A stretch of DNA of 64,000 nt from contig NC_083226.1 in the NCBI RefSeq assembly GCF_032191835.1, forward strand, positions 38,130,001 through 38,194,000. The letters are read 5' to 3'. The stretch is from Heteronotia binoei. Its lineage: Eukaryota. The position numbers and the translations under genes were made by a program. The notes below the pieces were generated by a model that did not search any database, had not been told where the DNA came from, and worked only from the letters and a program-made list of their open reading frames with translations. Below are positions 5,848 to 59,675 of this stretch, piece by piece (position 1 is the stretch's first letter; every line of letters begins with the position of its first letter).

Positions 5848-7982
5848 CTACCAAGGCGACCCAGCAGTTTCCACAGCCAACAGGGCATTTGAACACGGGT
5901 CTCCCATATTCTACTCCAGCACTAAGCACTACACCATACTGGGCCAAACAGCCTCTCTCAGCCAAAATTACCTCACAGGGTTGTTGTGCGAGTATAAAGT
6001 GATGTGGAGGAGAAGATGTATGCTGACCTGAGCACTTTGGAGGCATAAAATATAATAACATAATTTAAAAAAAAAAACAGGGATGTCAAAAATACCTTCT
6101 TTTTCTGTCCTTGGCTATTCAAAGCTTGGCAGCTAAATTCTTGTCACTGCAGAAAAGCAGGAACATCTTGTTCAAAATTATGAAGGGGCATGGCTTTGGG
6201 AGGAGCACAATATCAAGAATGGATATGTTCCTGGCAATAGGAGCAGCAGCCAAGCTACCAAACTGCAGCCAGTTGAACATTTCCAAAATTACCCCAGCCT
6301 TTCCACAGAACTAACTAGACTTCAAAATGCTCCAAGCTCAGTTTTGTCAGTGGACTTAACTGAAGGCCTTGTGCTTCTTTTTATGCTTTGATAGATAAGG
6401 TGGTAAATTAGATGAAAATAGCTTGCCAGGCTCATCTATGGCTGCTCCCTGGAGTTGCCAGGTCTGTGTTGGAAAATACCTGGAGATTTTGGGGGTTGAT
6501 CCCCTTTGGGGAGGGAAGGGACATCAGTTTTACTGGGTTGCCATAAGTCACCACTAGGTAATGTTTAGCAGCACATTATTCCAGATATGAGGAGGGATGC
6601 TGCCATCCATCAAGGCACCAGAACCAAGTAAAACACATAACAGAAATCTAGATTTGGGCAACAGAACTGGAGAATATAAAGGACAATTTACTTATGCCAC
6701 GGTGACAACCCTTATTTACAGAGTTGCCACGTCCTACCTGGCTACAGGCAGGGGGTCCTCTCTGGGATCTTCTGCAATGCTTGCAAAGCACACAGGGTGC
6801 AATGATGCCACCCAGAAGTCATGTTGTCATGTTGCTGAAATCAGGGGGTGGGGGTTGGCTCTAGTTGTTAGGCCGAACTCTATGGTTTGTAGCTGATTTA
6901 ACCATAGAGTTTTGCCCCAAAACTAGAGCGTCACTGCACATCAGTGATGTGATGACATCACTTCCGAGTAACATCATCACATCACCTTTCAGGCCAGTTG
7001 GGGGCAGGATTTCCTCCACTGACCAGTGCCCCACAAACCTGGAGGTGCTGCTGCCCCAGTGGGGGTCTGGTTACCCAACTTGTTTAGGTACATACCAGAC
7101 ATAGTAACTTGGGACATTTGGAAACTTTTAAAAATATGTAACTTTGTTGCTGTTGTTGGGGGGGAAATTGAAAACAATTCTAGGCAAATTGTCCTTTACT
7201 CCACAGCTACCCAAGCAAGCAATTAAAAGATCAGAGAACCAGTTCTGGGAAGCAGAATAGATTAAATGTGGAATCTGTATAATGAGGTGGCAACAATTTT
7301 TTTTTTTTTAACTCTGGCTGGATAGGCCAGACATATGGAAGTTAGATAGGGTTTCAGGAGACAGATGCATGTTTATGAGTTCATACTGAGTTAACTACAA
7401 AGCTTGAGGTTTTGCCAACATTTTGGAATACACAGGCAAACAATCTGGCTTATACTAAGCAAGACTCGCGATCCATTGAGGTTAGTATTATCCACTCATA
7501 CTGGCAGCAGCTCTCCAGGGTTTTAGGCTGAGGTCTTTCGTATCAACTACTATCTGATCTTTTCAACTGGAGATGTCAGGGGTTGAACCTAGAGCCTTCT
7601 CAGTAACAAGATCCATCACTGAGCTATGATTCCTCCCCATTACTTTTGAGAGAAGCAATGCTTTCCAGAAGAACTGAGGTTTTAAATACATGCTCTCATA
7701 TCACTGGTTAAATAGGCTGTTTTTCTTTGATCAACCACTAAGCCACAGTGTGGCATAATGGTTAAGTGCATGGACTCTTATCTGGGAGAACCAGGTTTGA
7801 TTCCCCACTCCTCCACTTGCAGCTGCTGGACTGGCCTTGGGTCAGCCACAGCTCTCACAGAGCTGTCCTTAGGGTGGCCAGATCGTCCCGCCCACCCGGG
7901 AAAGTCCCGCCCCTGCCCCCAAATTCCCGCCTCACGGGTTGGCTAACCCGGGACCACTGAAATCCCGGGTTCGCCAAAATCC

Positions 7983-8387
7983 CGAGGAGGAGTTGGAGGA
8001 GGAGGAAGATCTGGAAGAGGAGTTGGAGTTGGAGGAGGACTGGAGGAAGATCTGGAGGCGGAGGAGGAGTTGGAGGAGGAGGAAGCCCTGGCGGGGCTCT
8101 TCGGCTGCAGCGCATGCCGGGGCTTCCCGCTGGAGCCGGTGGTGGCGTCGTGCGGCCACGTGTTCTGCCGGCACTGCCTGGTGCATGGGGGCGCTACTGC
8201 AGCGTGTGCCGCACGCGGCTGGTGCGAAGGCCTCCTCCCGCCGTGGCCGTGCAGCTGAGCCGCCTAGCCAAGCGCTGCTTCCCGCGCCACTCCCGCAGGG
8301 CGCCCACCTGGCAGCACCTCCGACGCCTCCTCGACCAGCGCCGCTTCCCCGAAGCCGCCGAGGCAGCCACTCGCGCCCTGCGAGACG
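7983..8387 (+). pseudogene. LONRF1: Captured, frameshifted fragment of a LONRF1-like exon (acidic tract, RING-HC finger and start of the TPR-like helix)
   Basis: Joining frames gives EEELEEEE...ALAGLFGCSACRGFPLEPVVASCGHVFCRHCLVHG/GRYCSVCRTRLVRRPPPAVAVQLSRLAKRCFPRHSRRAPTWQHLRRLLDQRRFPEAAEAATRALRD. This has C3HC4 spacing and resembles LONRF1 as recalled from memory (CRGFLSEPVTVPCGHSYCRRCL...VVLNHLAEKWFP...LGELLHQGRYREALAAACEALR). Apparent 1-bp deletions lie near 8040 and in the G-run 8187-8191. The exact paralogue is uncertain. Confidence 0.65.
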
Positions 8388-8475
8388 TTAAGCCCCCCCC
8401 GAGGAAGGCAGGCAGGCAGGGAGGGAGGGGGCTGAAAGCGGGGGCGGGGCGGCTGGCGGGAGGGGGCAGCCGGCC

Positions 8476-8558
8476 TTCCTTCCTTCCTTCCCTCCCTCCC
8501 TCCCTCCCTCCTTCCTTCCTTCCTTCCTTCCCTCCCTCTTTCCCTCCCTCCCTCCCTC
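8476..8558 (+). repeat. (TTCC)n/(CCCT)n microsatellite inside the element
   Basis: Directly visible. Confidence 0.9.
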
Positions 8559-8670
8559 ATTTGGGGGAAATGATGTCACATGAAGTGATGTCACTTCCTG
8601 CTTCTGGCAGGTGGCACGGGGGAAACGATGTCACAGGAAGTGATGTCACTTCCTGTTTCCGGTGGTGGCA

Positions 8671-8699
8671 TGACGTCACCGGAAGTGACGTCACTTCCT
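8671..8699. promoter_or_regulatory. CRE plus ETS-CRE-ETS palindrome (CCGGAAGTGACGTCA at 8679-8693)
   Basis: TGACGTCA occurs at 8671-8678 and 8686-8693. GGAAGTGACGTCACTTCC (8681-8698) is a perfect 18-bp palindrome. Function not shown. Confidence 0.5.
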
Positions 8700-8851
8700 G
8701 TTTGCGGCGGCGCGCGCTTTGCGCACGCACACACACACATTCATTCCCCTCTCAAGGTGTCCCTGGCTGGCCTGCAGATATTATGGCCACCCTAGCTGTC
8801 CTTGAAAGGGCAGCTTCTGGGAGAGCTCTCTCAGCCTCACCTACCTCACAG

Positions 8852-9020
8852 CTGTGGAGTCTTAAAAGCAAAAATTCTATTTTGGGAGCTACTGGCATTA
8901 AAGTTGTGAGCAACCAATTTGGCTACTACATAAATCAGTTTGCTCTGGAGTCATCCTGAGCTAAGACAGAGGCTAAAAAACTGTGAGCTAGCTCACTAAC
9001 TCAGCTTAGAGGGAGCACTG
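8852..9020 (-). mobile_element. CAGTGTTCCCTCTAA-type MITE with one terminus deleted
   Basis: Ends 'cttagagggagcactg' and is colinear in reverse with 41830-42035. CTCACAG flanks both sides (8845-8851 and 9021-9027). Confidence 0.75.
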
Positions 9021-9369
9021 CTCACAGGGTGTCTGTTGTGGGGGAGAAAGGTAAAGGAGATTGTAAACCACTCTGAGACTCCAATACCACCATCTCCTCC
9101 TCCTTCTCCTTTTACTACTACTACTACCATCACCACCACCACTTCTACTACTGCTACTACTAATGCTTCCCAAAAGTAGTCAAAGGCTTTTTCAACATTT
9201 AAGGGTCAAAGAGAACAGACACTGTGTGGCTATCTTTGCCTTGTGATTGACATTCAAAGTATCCAGCAGACATGGGAACAATACTTGCAATGGACAGAAT
9301 GGACACATCCATATTATTATTCAACTAATAAGTTATTATGGACTGTGAAGATTTTTGCATCGTGATTGA

Positions 9370-17899: not shown

Positions 17900-19450
17900 A
17901 CACTCTCACCTCCACCCACGCAGGAAAAGGGAAAGCAGCCCAGGCAGCAGGATCTGACCCTCAAGCACAAGAGAGGGAGCGAGGCACACGAATGTGGGTC
18001 CCCTTTACGAAACGCACCCAGCACTCCAAAGAGACCACCCCACCGCCACATGCAAGCGCATGGCAAACATGTCCATGCGCCCTGCGTGCCGGAGAAGACA
18101 CACACCCACACAATTCCACGCTGCCCCTCGCAAGGAATGCCTCTGCAGACCTCAACATGTGCTCTCGGGGGTTCTCCTGCTTTGATTTCTGCATAGCTAC
18201 GAAAGCGGGGAGGTTACTGCACATTTCCGCGGGACTAACCCACCCACCCCCAAACCCAGCATATCCAGAACTGGCGTTCCAAACCAGCCGCGCAGTTTAC
18301 CCCTCCTCCCCGCCCCCGCAACCTGTCTCCATAAAGCACCCCTCATGTTTCAAAGCCAACCCTCCACATCCCCAGTTCTCCTCAAAGGTGTCCCCCGCCA
18401 CTAAGGGGGGGGGGGAGAGATCCTTCGCCTCACCCCCTCCTGGCTTCCTCCTCCTTCCTGCAGCGAGGCTATCCAAGCTAGGAGTAGCAATATCCACTCA
18501 GGCTGCCGCCGGGGGCCACCATCTCCATCCAGTGCATGATGCGCTCCGTCGAATGGGGGTGGGGAGGGGGTCTGAAAGAGAAAGCGAGAGGAGCGCGAGC
18601 CCACGACGAGCCGCGGCGGCGATCCCCTCCTCCTCCTCCTCCTCGCCTTCCCCCCCAATCCTCGCCTCGACCTCTTCCCTCGTCCACAAGGTCCAGGCTC
18701 GTCTATTTGTTCCGCGGGAAGGAGCGAGGGAAGGGGGTTGCCGCGGCTGACGATGCTGACGAGAGGTGGGGAAGGGAGGGGGAGATCGCGCAGGCGCAGG
18801 GCAGGGGGGACACTCAGCGCCGGCTCCCTCGCGCTTCCCGGCTGGTGTGTCCTGCGAGCAGGCACCGAGCTGCCCTATAGGGGAAGGGGGAGTGGCGTGG
18901 CGAGCCGAGGCTGGAGGGTCTGGGTAGGGGGCTTGGCGCAGCCGTCTCTCTCTCGCTCCCCTTAGCCCCCAGGCTCGGCTTGCATGGATCTCGCTTGGAA
19001 CCTCAGGCGCTGCTCTCCGTCGTGCCAAGCCGAGCAACGCGCTGCTGCTGTCTGTTGCAAGGTGCCCCCCCCCCCCTCCACGCTGGCTCATCCCACCGGT
19101 GCGGCCAGACCAGCGTCCTGTTACACGCCGCTCCCGCCGCCGTCCGGTTTACCGGCTTCTCTCCGGCTGTCTCCTTTGTCCGATATGAAGCGATCGGCCC
19201 TTTCCAGCTCACTTGCCCCTGGGTCTTCCTCCCCAGCAGCCCACATGGACGCGCGGCTTCAAAATACCGTGGCGTTCCCCGCCCCCCTCCCGCGGCAGTG
19301 CCTTTCCCCGGCGTGGAACCGAAATCTCGCTTTCCCTTTGGCTTCCTCTCTCTTTCGGCTCGTAGGATCTTGATCACTGACTCGGCCATCTCTGCGACAT
19401 CACCCACAGCGTGATTCGGCCTAGAAGTTCATTTCGGAGGGGGCCGCCCC
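17900..19450. promoter_or_regulatory. CpG island / probable gene promoter, possibly bidirectional
   Basis: Strong GC and CpG enrichment against the CpG-poor flanks, GGA/CCT runs, no recognisable repeat, and splice signals pointing away on both strands. Confidence 0.8.
18434..18571 (-). other. Candidate 138-nt early exon of a minus-strand gene
   Basis: Acceptor 'ctctcgctttctctttcAG|' (AG at 18573-18572) and donor 'GGGG|GTGAGG' (GT at 18433-18432). Contains the short ORF MHWMEMVAPGGSLSGYCYS*. Confidence 0.35.
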
Positions 19451-20287
19451 CGTTGGCTCGTGGCAGCAAAATTACTCAGGGGTCCACCTTAAAGACCGAG
19501 GGATTGCACTGGAACAGAATTTATTCCAGCATAAGCTTTCCGGTGAAAGACCTCAGCTACGCTGACAAACTCTGTTCCTCCCTGTTTAATTTGGCCAGAA
19601 GGATTTCTGAGCTGGGGGGTGGGTGGGGAGACCAAACACTGGGAGAACATAGGAGAAACGAGTAGAACTGGATAAATGCTTCCAAGGGCTTCCGAATTAA
19701 CCAGAAGCCCAAAGTAAGTTCATCATGGCTGCTTCCACATGGTGGTTTTGCTCTGCCATTGGCTGCCAAATGAGAGCAGTCTTTTCCAGAGGCATCTCCA
19801 CAGTGGAGTCCGTTCCTGCACTTTTCAGCTTTTCCCTTGCTGTGGTGCAGTCTTTCTCACATGTTATAGTGTGGATGCACTCCCTCCTGCTTTTACTTGC
19901 TGTCATGTGATGGGACCCACCCCAGACTTCAAAGGTCAACTGATGGCCTGAGACAAGCCATACATAGCTGGCAGCTGCAGCAAGCAGGCCAGAAGGCACC
20001 CAGAACAGGCAGGGCTGGCTCACCAACTAGACAAATTAGGCATTTGCCTAGGGCAGGGGCGGGGGTGCCGAATTGGGTTCTCCCCCCCTCTGGCACCCAA
20101 GACAAATGCCTAATTGCCCTTGGGCAGTTAGGAGGTGGCAGCGGGCAGGCCACCTCCATCCGCCCGCTCCCCCACTGGCACGCTCAGACACCAGCCTCGT
20201 GCTTACCAGCTTTGAGGGGCATCAGAACAGTGCTCTCTTAATAGAGAGCAGAATGAAGCTTTGCTCCCCGCTGCCTTCCTGTTCCAG

Positions 20288-23695: not shown

Positions 23696-25908
23696 AATTT
23701 ATTTTTATATCCCGCCCTCCCCCGCCAGAGGCGGGCTCAGGGCGGCTCACAGACATGGAAATTCCATGAATTAGATAAAACAATATAAATAACAATTATT
23801 AGATATAGTTAATTACATAATAATTTAAAATGAATAAAATAGATAAAAATAGGTGCTATAAAAATACTGTAAGTTGTAATATCCACAAGATGGCTAAATA
23901 GCTACACATCAGATTAGTCAGGTTCTGTCTCAAAGGCCAGCTGGAAAAGAAATGTTTTACAAGCCCTGCGGAATTGATTCAAGTCCCGCAGGGCTCGTAC
24001 CATCTCTGGAAGATGATTCCACCATCGAGGGGCCATTACCGAGAAGGCTTGCTCCCTGGTTGTCTTCAGTCTAGCCTCTCTTGGCCCAGGGATTGTTAGA
24101 AGATTCTGAGAGCTAGATCTCAGTGCTCTCTGGGGAACATATGGGGAGAGGCGGTCCCTTAGGTAGGCAGGTCCTCGGCCATATAGGGCTTTAAAGGTGA
24201 TAACCAGCACTTTATAGCGAACACGGTACACAACAGGTAGCCAATGCAGATCCCGCAGCCCAGGCCGCGCATGTTCCCACCGTGGTAGTCCCATTAGCAG
24301 CCTGGCTGCTGCGTTCTGGACTACCTGGAGTTTCCGTGTTCGGTATAAGGGCAGCCCCATGTAGAGGGCATTGCAGTAGTCTAGTCTCGAGGTGACCGTT
24401 GCGTGGATCACATTTGCTAGGTCGCTGCACTCCAAGAAGGGAGCCAACTGCCTCGCCCTCTTGAGATGAAAGAAGGCGGACCTAGCAGTGGCAGCTACCT
24501 GGGCCTCCATTGATAAAGAGGATTCCAGCAGCACTCCCAGGCTCTTGACTTTACGCACTGGTATCAGTGGCGCACCGTCGAAAGCTGGTAGGGTAATCTC
24601 CCCTCCCGGTCCGCAGCGGCCCACACAAAGGACCTCAGTCTTCGCCGGATTCAACTTCAGCCCGCTCAGCCTGAGCCAGTCAGCCACGGCTTGTAATGCT
24701 CGGTCCAGATTTACAGGGACATCGCCAGCCCGGCCGTCCATCAATAGATAGAGCTGGGTGTCATCTGCATATTGATGACAACCCAGCCCATACCTCCGTG
24801 CAATCTGGGCAAGGGGGCGCATAAAGATGTTAAACAACATCGGGGAGAGAACTGCCTCCTGAGGCACACCACAATGAAGTGGGTGTCTCTGAGACAGCTC
24901 CCCCCCAATTGCCACCCTTTGTCCCCGGCCTTCAAGAAAGGAGGAGAGCCACTGTAAGGCTAGCCCCCGAATTCCTGCGTCGGCGAGGCGGCGGGTCAGC
25001 AGCTGATGGTCGACCATATCGAACGCAGCCGATAGGTCTAGCAGCAGCAATACTGCCGAGCCGCCTCGATCCAGTTGCCGTCGGAGGTCATCCATGAGGG
25101 CGACCAAGACTGTTTCCGTCCCATGGCCCGGGCGAAAGCCGGACTGGCATGGGTCCAAGGTGGAGGCGTCCTCCAAAAAATCCTGTAACTGCGATGCCAC
25201 AGCCCTCTCAATAATTTTGCCCAAAAAGGGCAAATTTGAGACCGGCCGGTAATGTGCCAATTCGGCCGGGTCTGATGAAGGTTTTTTCAAGAGAGGGCAG
25301 ACCAATGCCTCTTTCAGGGGTGTTGGAAAAACACCCTCTGAAAGAGATCGATTTATAATATCCCATATAGGATATCTTAGTTCCTCCTGGCAGGCCTTAA
25401 TTAGCCAGGAGGGGCATGGGTCCAGATCACAAGTTGTGGATCGTGCAGTGCCAAGAATTCTGTCGACCTCCTCCAAGCTGAGCGGGTCGAAGCAATCCAG
25501 AGTTAAATCAGAAGACACGCATTGGGCCTCGAGTTCGCTTACTGCATCCAAATTGGCAGGGCAGTCGTGGCGGAGCGATTGGACCTTATCAGCAAAAAAT
25601 TTCGCGAAAGCCTCACAGCCAATCTCCTATTCCTTAGCTTTTAAATTGCCCTGTGGCAATGTAGTAAGGTTCCGAATTATTCTAAATAATTGGGCCGGGC
25701 GCGAATTTGCAGATGCAATCTTAGCCGCAAAGTATGTTTTCTTTGCGGCCTTGATTGCCATCTCATAGGACTTCATAAACTTCCTATAAGATGTTCTAGT
25801 CGCTTCGTCATGAGTACGCCGCCATTGCCTCTCTTGCTGTCTAAGGCCTTGTTTCAGCTGGCGTAATTCCGGGATATACCACGGAGCCAGCTTAGTCCGA
25901 GGTCCGGA
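23696..25908 (-). mobile_element. Young 5'-truncated L2 LINE
   Basis: CpG-rich, with a near-intact ORF2 and a 3' UTR ending 'tgagccgccctgagcccgcc...gggcgggatataaa' before the (ATT)n tail. Confidence 0.93.
23914..25908 (-). CDS. L2 ORF2 reverse transcriptase, 5'-truncated, with one in-frame TAG at 25629-25627
   Basis: The 545-aa ORF has the non-LTR RT motifs YRPVSNLPFLGKIIE, QSGFRPGHGTET, LLLLDLSAAFD, GVPQ..VLSP, YADD and RLDYCNALY. The same frame continues upstream (APWYIPELRQLK...YFAAKIASA...) across a single stop. Confidence 0.92.
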
Positions 25909-33555: not shown

Positions 33556-34343
33556 TAGGGTTCCCAACCCTCCCGCCCTGCTGGGGGACCCCTGGATTAG
33601 GAGCCTTTCCCCCCCGATCTCCAAGAACGTGGAAGTGGGAGGGGTGGGGTGGGGAAACGGCGCGGCCTCCCTTCGGGAGGTGCATGCTGGGACTCGTAGT
33701 CCTTGCATCCTCTCTGGCTGCTACAGGCGTCTCCTCGGGAAGTCTGGCCGGCAGAGGGGGGGAGCTTCGCTCCCAGAGGACCATGTGCGTTTCTACCTCT
33801 GGAGGCTTCAGTCGCTGATTGAAAGGCTTCCTCTTGGGATGGGGTGTCTGTGTTACTTTGAAAAAGTTGGCAGCAACTCGTGAGTAGAGAGGCCGATCCC
33901 CCTTCAGTGTTGCCAGAAATGGGGGGGGGGGAAGTCTGCTGAGCACTTCATTATTCTCTATGTGGAGATTGATTCTCATAGGGTATAATGGGGAATTAAT
34001 CTGGAGGTTTTGAGGGCTCTGTGGGTGCTGTTTTTTGAGGTAGAGGCACCATACTTTCAGTATAGTATCTAGTGACTCTCTCCAAAGTATCCGCCAAGTT
34101 TCAAAACGATTGGACCATGGGGTCCAATTCTATGAGCCCCAAAAGAAGGTGCCCCTATCCTTCATTATTTCCTATGGAACGAAGACATTTAAAAAGGTGT
34201 GCAGTCCCTTTAAATGTGATGGCCAGAACTCCCTTGGAGTTCAATTATGCTTGTCACACCCTTGTTCCTGGCTCCGCCCCGATGTCTCCTGGCTCCACCC
34301 CCAAAGTCCCCAGATATTTCTTGAATTGGACTTGGCAAGCCTA
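33556..34343 (+). mobile_element. 788-bp TAGGGTTGCC-family non-autonomous hAT element with perfect 8-bp TSD
   Basis: Termini TAGGGTTCCCAA / TTGGCAAGCCTA. TSD CTTCTGGT (33548-33555 and 34344-34351). Confidence 0.9.
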
Positions 34344-36385: not shown

Positions 36386-36808
36386 TTGCACCCCTTTTAT
36401 TTCTTGAGAACATGAAGAACCACTTCATAACCAAAATCCCTGAGGTGGTTCACAAAAATAGAAACAGTACAACCAAATCAGTAAAACCCTAATTATCAAA
36501 TTTTGGATAATTCTCAATAGTCACAAGAGTATAAAAGCTGAAATCTTAATAGCAGCTATTCAAAAGAATAATCAATAAAGAGCAGGTAGAAAGAAAAGCA
36601 ACAGGTAACAGTAAAGATGTGAAAATTAATAGAGTCAGCTTAATTATTAGCTGCCTCCAAATACCTGGTCTACATCTTACCTGGTTCCAGTTTTGGAAAT
36701 GTGATTATATAGACTTCAAAAGATATAGGTTTGGGTCTTTATTACTGGCAGAGTGAAGGCCACAGAATGGGACTTCCCTACAACCCTCCTTCTACTGTAG
36801 TCCATAGA

Positions 36809-37017
36809 TAGGGTTGTAAACCTTCAGGAGTTCTCCCACAACTACAGTTGATCTCCAGATGACCAAGATCACTTCCCCCAGAGAAAATGGCTGCCTTGGA
36901 GAGTGGGTTGTATGGCATTATACCTTCTTGAGGTCCCTCTCATCCCCAAAACCACTCTTCTTCAGGTTCGACCCTCAAAGTCTCCTGGAATTTCCCATTC
37001 CAGATCTGGCAACCCTA
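36809..37017 (+). mobile_element. Short TAGGGTTGCC-family MITE
   Basis: TAGGGTTG...GGCAACCCTA termini and the recurrent core. Confidence 0.75.
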
Positions 37018-45809: not shown

Positions 45810-46040
45810 TACTAGCCTCCAGTGGAACCTGAGAATCTCCTAGAATTACAGCTCCTTTCCAGATTACAGAGATCAATTCCCCTGGAGAAAATGGATGCTT
45901 TGGAGAGTGGACTCCATGGCGTTGTGCCCTGCTGAAGTCCCTGTCCTCCCCAGGCTCTACCCCCAAATCTCCAGGAGTTTCCCAACCTGGATCTGGCAAC
46001 CCAACTCCTGCTAGTGGCCAGAAAGGACCTGGCAACCCTA
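45810..46040 (+). mobile_element. Short TAGGGTTGCC-family MITE
   Basis: Recurrent core with two consecutive GGCAACCC termini. Confidence 0.7.
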
Positions 46041-53620: not shown

Positions 53621-54017
53621 TCCAGGAAAATTTCAGGCTTGATTTGGTCTTAGGATCCACTTATTTGTCTTTCTGGTGGGCCATAGTTTGTGTAAAACTG
53701 TCATCCAATGCCACATTTCAAAGGAAAGCTGCTATCAAAGAAAAACTGCTGCCAAAACTTGCCTCCCTCTTGGACTTTTCTACAGTTCGCTTGGGCAAAG
53801 GTGGTGCCACTTTGCCATGACACCCCTAAGAGGTGGAGAAAGAGGCATGTGGCTCAGTCTTCTCCACATTCAATGGCAAACAGGGTGCAGCAAAACCCCA
53901 GACCCATAACACCTTCCCAATATCCCTAAAAGAAAATGCTGGTCAGAGCTCTTCTTATTAGTTCTGAGACTGGTGTTTTTGTTCATCAGAGCTGGAAGGG
54001 TTAACTTGTGTCTTGGA

Positions 54018-54294
54018 TAGGGTTCCCAGCCTCCTGCTGGGGGCAGGGTTTCCCCAATGTTGGGGTCTCCAACCCACCATTACAGGATTGGCAAGCAGGG
54101 AAACCCCACAAAGAGCTCTGTCAGCCCTCAATGTACCCAGCATGATGACATCACCAGGAAGCAATGTAATCACACTGGGCACATTGTGCAGGGACACTTT
54201 AGCATTTTGGTAAACCCCCCCCCCATGGCACCATAGAGACCCCCCACACACACACACACAAAAAAGAATGCTAGAGTGAGACCTCGCAACCCTA
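54018..54294 (+). mobile_element. TAGGGTTGCC-family MITE
   Basis: TAGGGTTCCC / GCAACCCTA termini. Flanks GTCTTGGA / GTCCTGGG match at 6/8 positions. Confidence 0.72.
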
Positions 54295-55112
54295 GTCCTG
54301 GGGTCTTTTTGTTTCACAGTAACGAGCAGTAAATTATGGGGACTTCCAATGATGAGTTTCAGGCTAGAGTTCAAGGAAAGTACTCCTGTATAATATGACA
54401 GTCAGGGTGGAGATCTTTCCCCCCTTATATGTGGAACCCAGTCCTGTGCACTCTGGTTCTCATGGCATCTCAACAGCTGCTTGTCTTAGCTTATTTGACA
54501 AAGAAAATATCCCAGTTGTACTAGTTTCTGGGCTCATTTAGCTAAATCCACAAATTTTCTCAAAGCAATTAAAACAATCATACAAAATAAGATTTTTAAA
54601 AATCCAGTAATCCATACTTTTCTCCACCCCACAATATCATAGGGTCAAACATCATAGGGGTCATGTGGATGAAGGGATTTTCCATTATAAAAATCCATTT
54701 GGACAAAGCTTTAGACAAGCTGCCACCTGAAATTAAAGTTTTCTCTCAGTATTTAGAGATGTTTTCTCAGTCTTTACAGCTACTTATGGTTAGATGTTCC
54801 TCATGGAATGCGTAACGATCACTTGGTGCTGTACCCTTACAGCATTAACAAAAGTAACAATTTTTTGATGGAAAACTACATAGTCAGGGTTTGATTTTTT
54901 TAAATAGATGGAGGCAATAACTGTGCCAATTCATGCCAAAGAAGGTGCCAGATTAACATTTAATGTGCAGCTAGATCTTATATTGTTTTAAGGTTGTCAG
55001 TGGCAGCCTAAGCAGAGACCCTTCTAAGTACAGTAAAGTCAATAGGTTTAGAAAGATGTAGCTCTGTTTGGGAATGCACCGTTAGCATCATGGTGTCTAA
55101 ATGCAACTTCTA

Positions 55113-59401: not shown

Positions 59402-59675
59402 GAGCCAGTTTGGTGTAGTGGTTAAGTGCACGGACTCATATCTGGAAGATCCGGGTTTGATTCCCCACTCCTCCACTTGCACCTGCTGGAATAGCCTTGG
59501 GTCAGCCATAGCTCTCGTAGGAGTTGTCCTTGAAAGGGCAGCTGCTGTAAGAGCTCTCTCAGCCTCACCTACCTTACAGGGTGTCTGTTTTGGGGGGGGG
59601 GAAGGAGATTGTGAGAGCTCTGAGACTCTGAGATTCAGAGTATAGGGCAGGATATAAATCCAATAAATCCAATCC
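59402..59675 (+). mobile_element. Uninterrupted tRNA-derived SINE with L2-like tail
   Basis: A/B boxes 'ggtgtagtggttaag...gtttgattcccc'. Serves as the empty-site reference for 7741-9083. Confidence 0.87.

Follow-up and report, generated by a model that had tools for sequence, protein, structure and literature searches.

The 64,000-nucleotide stretch of Heteronotia binoei DNA analysed here (assembly GCF_032191835.1, contig NC_083226.1, positions 38,130,001 to 38,194,000; hereafter the window, whose own numbering is used throughout) raises the question of how a piece of a gene came to lie inside a transposon. A lizard-type short interspersed element (SINE) is split by an element of 925 bp (7870-8794), and we read this element, with a probability of roughly 0.78, as a Pack-type non-autonomous hAT transposon, in which the ends of a family of miniature inverted-repeat transposable elements (MITEs) enclose a genomic copy, about 0.5-0.6 kb in length, of a LONRF1-type gene. 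The copied part would comprise the 3' portion of exon 1 (Glu-rich stretch, first RING, linker and TPR start), the exon-intron junction and about 100 bp of intron, the last of which would have expanded into microsatellites. The element and its target are delimited by the following features:

7745-9080, forward strand: host SINE copy that received the element, with a second nested repeat inside it (alignment and contig joints)
7862-7869, unstranded: left target-site duplication (TSD), GCTGTCCT, direct repeat
7870-7880, forward strand: 5' terminal inverted repeat (TIR), TAGGGTGGCCA, 11 nt, perfect
8784-8794, reverse strand: 3' TIR, a perfect inverted copy of TAGGGTGGCCA
8795-8802, unstranded: right TSD, GCTGTCCT, direct repeat
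59402-59675, forward strand: uninterrupted paralogous SINE copy, used as the 'empty site' reference (alignment)

The two flanks of the element join as one SINE when aligned with the copy at 59402-59675, and many SINE contigs of the sequencing runs X1 and X5 jump from about 7855 to about 8797; the 925 bp are therefore an insertion into the SINE. These empty sites are paralogous, not allelic. X1 and X5 are runs of other samples (related organisms), available as low-coverage DNA contigs. No public run contains the locus, the best share of words being 0.18. Contigs of four runs were compared over 7300-9300, skipping the simple repeats at 7982-8044 and 8393-8565. A 10-nt direct repeat, AGCTGTCCTT, adjoins both ends of the element (7861-7870 and 8794-8803), and the TSD is readable as 8 to 10 bp because the terminal T and A can be assigned either to the TIR or to the SINE. 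Since other MITEs in the window end in TAGGGTTGCCA, the element starts at the T and the TSD has 8 bp, the length typical of hAT. The TIRs of hAT elements are short and start with 5'-YARNG, a form that TAGGGTGGCCA also has. Contigs of run X1, whose matches start at 7870 and stop at 8794, show these termini at further loci, next to unrelated flanks. Assignment to the non-autonomous hAT-type transposons is thus supported by the 8-bp TSD, by the TAGGG... terminus and by the recurrence of the termini in other flanks. No open reading frame (ORF) for a transposase with a hAT dimerisation domain was found in the 64-kb window, in which the only long transposon ORF encodes a reverse transcriptase. The original prediction, made from the letters alone, had described perfect 11-bp TIRs, a perfect 8-bp TSD, a hAT element and an insertion into a SINE whose empty site is visible at 59402-59675, and in all of this it was correct.

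The interior of the element is made up of the following parts:

7982-8083, forward strand: low-complexity, GAG-rich 'acidic' tract in which 41 bp are duplicated in tandem (8001-8080; period 41, 2 copies, 89% match)
8084-8189, forward strand: first half of RING1 (CSAC...CGHVFCRHC), derived from LONRF1 exon 1, in the frame of 8040 (Pfam, DNA identity)
8187-8191, forward strand: frame break in a run of five G, past the sixth zinc ligand and ahead of the last CxxC (assembly only)
8192-8387, forward strand: last CxxC of RING1, linker, conserved L..LA...FP motif and TPR start, up to the end of exon 1, in the next frame (phmmer)
8388-8562, forward strand: degenerate exon 1/intron 1 junction, which reads GTTAAGCC where gecko and skink loci have GGTAAGCC (alignment), followed by intron-like G-rich DNA and then by (AGGC)n and (TCCC)n microsatellites

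RING1 is complete, with C-x2-C-x11-C-x-H-x2-C-x2-C before the frame break and C-x2-C after it. The frame of 8040 translates as ...LEEDLEAEEELEEEEALAGLFGCSACRGFPLEPVVASCGHVFCRHCLVHG, and the frame past the break as RYCSVCRTRL...LSRLAKRCFP...EAAEAATRALRDV. The first half matches Pfam zf-C3HC4 with 25.5 bits, against a cut-off of 21, and the second piece has a weak match to TPR_16. A phmmer search with the translation of 8192-8389 against 1.84 billion cluster representatives returned six matches. Two of them (P0004 and P0005) are short unnamed ORFs with 48% identity over residues 3-65, two (P0002 and P0006) are microbial proteins named as TPR-repeat proteins, and the remaining two (P0001 and P0003) match in six to eight short stretches of low-complexity appearance. 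P0004 and P0005 are members of an exon-1 ORF family and are linked, through P0033, to dozens of proteins that carry the name LONRF1 ('LON peptidase N-terminal domain and RING finger protein 1') in NCBI and UniRef. The linked proteins come from mammals, birds, turtles and five squamates (Lerista, Hemicordylus, Gekko kuhli, Sceloporus and Varanus). The alignment of the cargo with LONRF1 proteins is colinear; it begins shortly before RING1 and reaches the final residue of exon 1.

The DNA leads to the same gene. The best block, 91 bp at 8090-8180, is 82% identical to a gecko-type LONRF1 locus (L003), and identity to two other LONRF1 loci is 77-79%. At the exon end and the first intron bases the cargo reads GAGACGTTAAGCC, against GAGGGTAAGCC in L003 and GAGGGTAAGC in another LONRF1 locus (L001), and the G-rich stretch beyond the junction resembles the intron of L003. 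Because the exon 1/intron 1 junction is present, genomic DNA and not mRNA was copied, and a cDNA (retrocopy) origin is ruled out. LONRF2 and LONRF3 were rejected as parents: only LONRF1-type exon-1 ORFs were matched, and a 99/99 split in the tree described below puts the cargo on the same side as the squamate LONRF1 sequences. For the piece 8192-8391, a feature search of the ESM Atlas gave only weak bacterial leads and was uninformative, and a search of the PDB gave nothing meaningful; with the RING half, the PDB returned generic RING/TRIM matches only. The ratio of observed to expected CpG (o/e) is 0.90 at 8084-8387, against 0.10-0.13 in the flanks and 0.23 in the whole window. The original prediction of a CpG-rich interior with a complete C3HC4 RING, most resembling the N-terminal RING of LONRF1, is therefore borne out on all three counts, the frame break notwithstanding. 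As in the Pack-type transposons with TIRs (Pack-TIRs), an internal segment that is not transposon DNA has a recognisable gene of origin, here LONRF1 exon 1 with its intron junction.

On either side of this interior lie the two ends of the transposon family:

7870-7981, forward strand: 5' family backbone, in which short TCCCGCC/TCCCGGG repeats lie subterminally (X1 contigs 87-96% identical)
8563-8794, forward strand: 3' family backbone of three 45-55-bp repeats, (CA)n and the terminus (recurs in X1 and X5 contigs)

The matches of X1 contigs start exactly at 7870, behind unrelated upstream sequence. At the other end, contigs of X1 and X5 match from about 8571 to 8709, depth carries on to 8794 (bins 8573-8773) and one X1 contig passes 8794 into a different flank. 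The depth of the element ends is about 0.2-1% of that of the SINE, and at bins 8104-8304 it is zero in all four runs. The ends are those of a moderately repeated hAT MITE family, with about 112 bp on the 5' side and about 230 bp on the 3' side. As the RING part does not recur while both ends do, it is cargo and not family consensus. It had been foreseen that the interior might turn out to be a standard part of a transposon consensus, and this is very probably not the case, since the centre lacks depth where the abundant family ends have it. The filler is thus absent from ordinary family members, a comparison in which the low-coverage contigs of X1 and X5 rule out high copy number only. The other MITEs in the window were considered as an 'empty' reference for the family and discarded, having only the terminal 15 bp in common with it, and they belong to different families. 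We consider it very unlikely that an assembly chimera produced the interior, or that the RING segment is a piece of family consensus. In favour of such a reading, no sequencing run contains more than 18% of the words of the locus, and the source reads are not among the runs. Against it, the element lies precisely between its TSDs in a SINE that is otherwise continuous, LONRF1 exon 1 and its intron junction can be followed colinearly through the interior, and the family copies in X1 and X5 lack 8104-8304.

Some observations speak against a Pack-type hAT with LONRF1 cargo, or narrow what can be said of it. Contigs naturally end at simple repeats, so that the breakpoints are approximate and the assignment of the GAG-rich tract is uncertain; those ending at 7981 may stop there merely because a simple repeat adjoins, and the tract is possibly family-derived. 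The junctions at about 7981/7982 and 8562/8563 rest on the assembly, without independent read support. The hAT target consensus nTnnnnAn, which is a preference and no strict rule, is not matched, as neither GCTGTCCT nor its complement AGGACAGC has T at position 2 and A at position 7. The parental locus of this genome has not been seen, and the source is placed in a host gene of this species by squamate and gecko affinity only. Finally, one copy is known: blastn and tblastn found no LONRF1 exon or parental copy elsewhere in the 64-kb window, exact look-up of five element ORFs in a collection of 15 billion proteins found none of them, and protein searches and ORF look-ups gave no second copy of the cargo, in collections that need not include this genome.

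The cargo, of about 115 codons against about 720-760 in LONRF1, does not encode a working protein. The original prediction had attributed the broken reading frame to two apparent 1-bp deletions. The one at 8187-8191 is real in the assembly and lies in a homopolymer, and the spacer ahead of the last CxxC lacks one residue compared with LONRF1 orthologues. The other, near 8040, is explained by the 41-bp duplication: as 41 bp do not make up whole codons, the duplication alone shifts the acidic frame and a 1-bp deletion is unnecessary. Squamate LONRF1 proteins are Glu-rich at the same position (LEEDEE in Sceloporus, GEGEEDDEEE in Hemicordylus), and the GAG-rich tract, or part of it, may be parental and have grown by expansion from the Glu-rich stretch ahead of RING1. 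There is no ATG in the RING frame within the element, and of the series RING1-TPR-RING2-LON that a functional LONRF1 has in an open frame only RING1 and the first TPR helix are present. Without a start codon and the rest of the gene, and with a frame break, this is a dead gene piece and not a ligase. The only plausible activity of the fragment would be that of a CpG-rich, promoter-like block; in the 3' backbone each of the 45-55-bp repeats (8563-8707) holds the palindrome GGAAGTGA(C/T)GTCACTTCC, with an ETS-like plus a CRE-like motif.

The age of the cargo and that of the insertion have to be considered separately. The cargo has 45-50% protein identity to every LONRF1, while squamate LONRF1 proteins are 70-89% alike over the same columns. 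In a maximum-likelihood tree it falls on the squamate side of the 99/99 split, grouping weakly (78/71) with two gecko sequences, and its terminal branch is 1.32 long against a median of 0.12. The synonymous distance (dS) between cargo and gecko LONRF1 is 0.72, compared with 0.43 between gecko and skink, and the ratio of nonsynonymous to synonymous distance (dN/dS) is 0.53. When column invariance was scored over 14 LONRF1 orthologues, the cargo was found to keep 23 of 31 invariant columns against 24 of 54 variable ones (Fisher p = 0.012), together with all eight zinc ligands. The preferential retention of invariant columns and zinc ligands suggests that much of the divergence took place under selection for the RING fold.

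This tree also bears on an arrival from outside the host, in which a loaded element with a gecko-like LONRF1 piece would have come from another squamate lineage, so that the cargo would not derive from this host. Horizontal transfer of hAT families among squamates is known, gecko LONRF1 is the weakly supported neighbour of the cargo in the tree, and EPVVA is common to the cargo and two gecko sequences only. With such weak tree support and so long a cargo branch, we consider this very unlikely.

The insertion itself looks younger than its contents. The perfect 8-bp TSD is a weak clock only. In the element CpG o/e is 0.7-0.9 and in the flanks 0.10-0.13, which indicates modest age or lack of methylation. 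Nevertheless, the element is not brand new, as the CpG decay of its 3' backbone demonstrates: at least five CpG of the X1 and X5 copies have become TpG or CpA here (8599, 8605, 8616, 8663 and 8670), and CpG has decayed to TpG in the two upstream repeats of the 3' backbone, by comparison with the third unit and with the copies in other runs. A recent capture, as first proposed from the perfect termini and retained CpG, is thus not borne out, given 45-50% protein identity, 82% DNA identity over the best 91 bp and this decay. The puzzle is a young-looking insertion with an old-looking yet 'RING-shaped' cargo. The divergence of the cargo is too large to have arisen since this insertion, and the source would therefore be a diverged LONRF1-like paralogue, or the cargo would have travelled for a long time in the element lineage.

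How the fragment entered is a further question. As proposed for animal Pack-TIRs, entry would have taken place by template switching during double-strand-break repair or replication. It may have happened in place: an ordinary MITE would have entered the SINE, and a later internal break would have been repaired from a LONRF1-like segment, in which case the cargo never transposed and the TSD is uninformative about it. We hold this to be a real possibility, at clearly less than even odds. Nearly all animal Pack-TIRs (about 98.6% in 100 genomes) are single-copy, which is attributed to transposition-independent gap filling as the best explanation (PMC8277862); a second copy of the cargo is not known here, and the cargo region has no depth in X1 and X5. 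On the other hand, gap filling is biased in cis, 57% of parents lying within 15 kb (PMC8277862), and the 8 kb upstream and 55 kb downstream contain no parental sequence, which speaks mildly for an element that arrived loaded. Filling in place would also make the cargo younger than an insertion with perfect TSD and TIRs, and the 45-50% identity would demand a strongly diverged paralogue as the donor.

Alternatively, the element would have taken up its LONRF1 fragment earlier, at a different locus, and, once loaded, would have moved, possibly repeatedly, and finally into this SINE. This history is tentative, its chance being nearly even. It accommodates a cargo dS that outstrips the apparent age of the element (perfect TSD and TIRs, CpG o/e 0.7-0.9), and hAT-type MITE termini ending in TAGGGTTGCCA(GATC) are abundant in the window, with 18 in 64 kb against 3.5 expected by chance. 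The site is distal from any parent, as in all multicopy Pack-TIRs, the rare cases from frog and alligator that are explained by template switching followed by transposition (PMC8277862). However, no second copy has been observed, multicopy Pack-TIRs are rare in animals (4/281; PMC8277862), and the retained invariant positions and zinc ligands point to divergence under selection in a gene and not to drift in a transposon. Arrival already loaded is the most likely course of events, only slightly favoured over filling in place. The idea that the family is mobilising a host exon is not supported, since no second cargo copy was found in the window or in protein collections that need not include this genome, and most single-copy animal Pack-TIRs represent gap filling in place (PMC8277862).

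Several other repeats and features were recorded in the window. Downstream of the hAT element, the same SINE copy contains another nested repeat, about 165 bp long (about 8851-9015), which is also repeated in X1 and X5 contigs and is unclassified; in SINE copies that lack it, about 8836-8850 joins about 9021-9028. The TAGGGTTGCCA(GATC) termini lie at 499, 5449, 11914, 32896, 36790-37017, 45815-46040 and 54011-54296, and their families share the terminal 15 bp only. A second hAT-type element of 788 bp (33556-34343) has a perfect 8-bp TSD, CTTCTGGT, and the termini TAGGGTTCCCAACCC and TAGGCTTGCCAAGTC. A ZNF143-like promoter motif and a GTGAGT donor-like site lie in its GC-rich 5' third (about 33600-33890), and the remainder resembles MITE backbone; the element is a candidate second Pack-type hAT, its 5' third having the appearance of a promoter plus first exon. 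A native-looking CpG island at about 18000-19500 (GC 0.57-0.64), without bounding hAT termini, is probably the promoter or first exon of a host gene about 10 kb from the element; no LONRF1 similarity was found in it. On the reverse strand, 23914-25551 holds a 545-aa open frame with an RVT_1 domain (E = 3e-35), the remnant of a retroelement of the long interspersed element (LINE) type.

Gene capture by animal Pack-TIRs is known, and this locus is a further example, from a squamate, that has yielded a dead gene fragment. The only squamate or lizard genome in the published survey, anoCar2, had 0 Pack-TIRs (PMC8277862), and our literature search found no Pack-TIR term tied to squamates. As squamates are thus without a documented Pack-TIR in that survey, the element provides a clean, fully bounded example from a squamate lineage, in which DNA transposons appear recently active. 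The cargo is a CpG-island first exon. If there is a capture bias towards open, GC-rich 5' gene ends, it would resemble that of plant Pack-MULEs, and the capture mechanism could be tested in a vertebrate. A bolder proposal, which we regard as unlikely on present evidence, is that this element belongs to an active, genome-wide Pack-hAT system in a squamate that prefers CpG-island first exons and promoters, with the RING cargo kept under purifying selection in an as yet unknown LONRF1-like paralogue or in the element lineage. The promoter- or first-exon-like interior of the TSD-bounded element at 33556-34343 is an independent, still weak, reason for it, and the other is that 8/8 zinc ligands and 23/31 invariant LONRF1 positions are kept despite about 50% divergence. 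Such a system, if real, would be the vertebrate counterpart of rice Pack-MULEs.

Compared with LONRF1 exon 1 itself, the cargo has the same succession of a Glu-rich stretch, a C3HC4 RING1, a linker, a motif of the L..LAEKWFP type, the first TPR helix and the exon end. In the gene GTAAGC stands next to the exon end, and the splice donor of the cargo is degenerate. The cargo also differs in having no start codon and one frame break, and in an identity far below the 70-89% found among squamate orthologues. With rice Pack-MULEs the element shares the capture of a gene fragment, here a CpG-island first exon. The parental genes of Pack-MULEs in rice are GC-rich, lowly methylated and in open chromatin (PMC5861414), and the CpG-island cargo is a suggestive parallel to them. 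Unlike this element, they belong to the MULE superfamily, with 9-10-bp TSDs, long TIRs and thousands of copies, many of which are expressed. The original prediction held gene capture to be best documented in plants, a view that is out of date, as 370 Pack-TIRs have been reported from 100 animal genomes, 208 of them hAT (Tan et al. 2021, Nat Commun; PMC8277862). Two differences separate the present element from that survey: an unambiguous parental copy was required there and the parent has not been located here, and the set was selected to be young whereas the filler here is unusually diverged from its gene family. In other respects it agrees with the animal Pack-hATs, which likewise have intact termini and a TSD around a short contiguous piece of host genomic DNA, with hAT as the commonest carrier, and it has in common with the multicopy animal cases a filler that is GC-rich relative to the genome.

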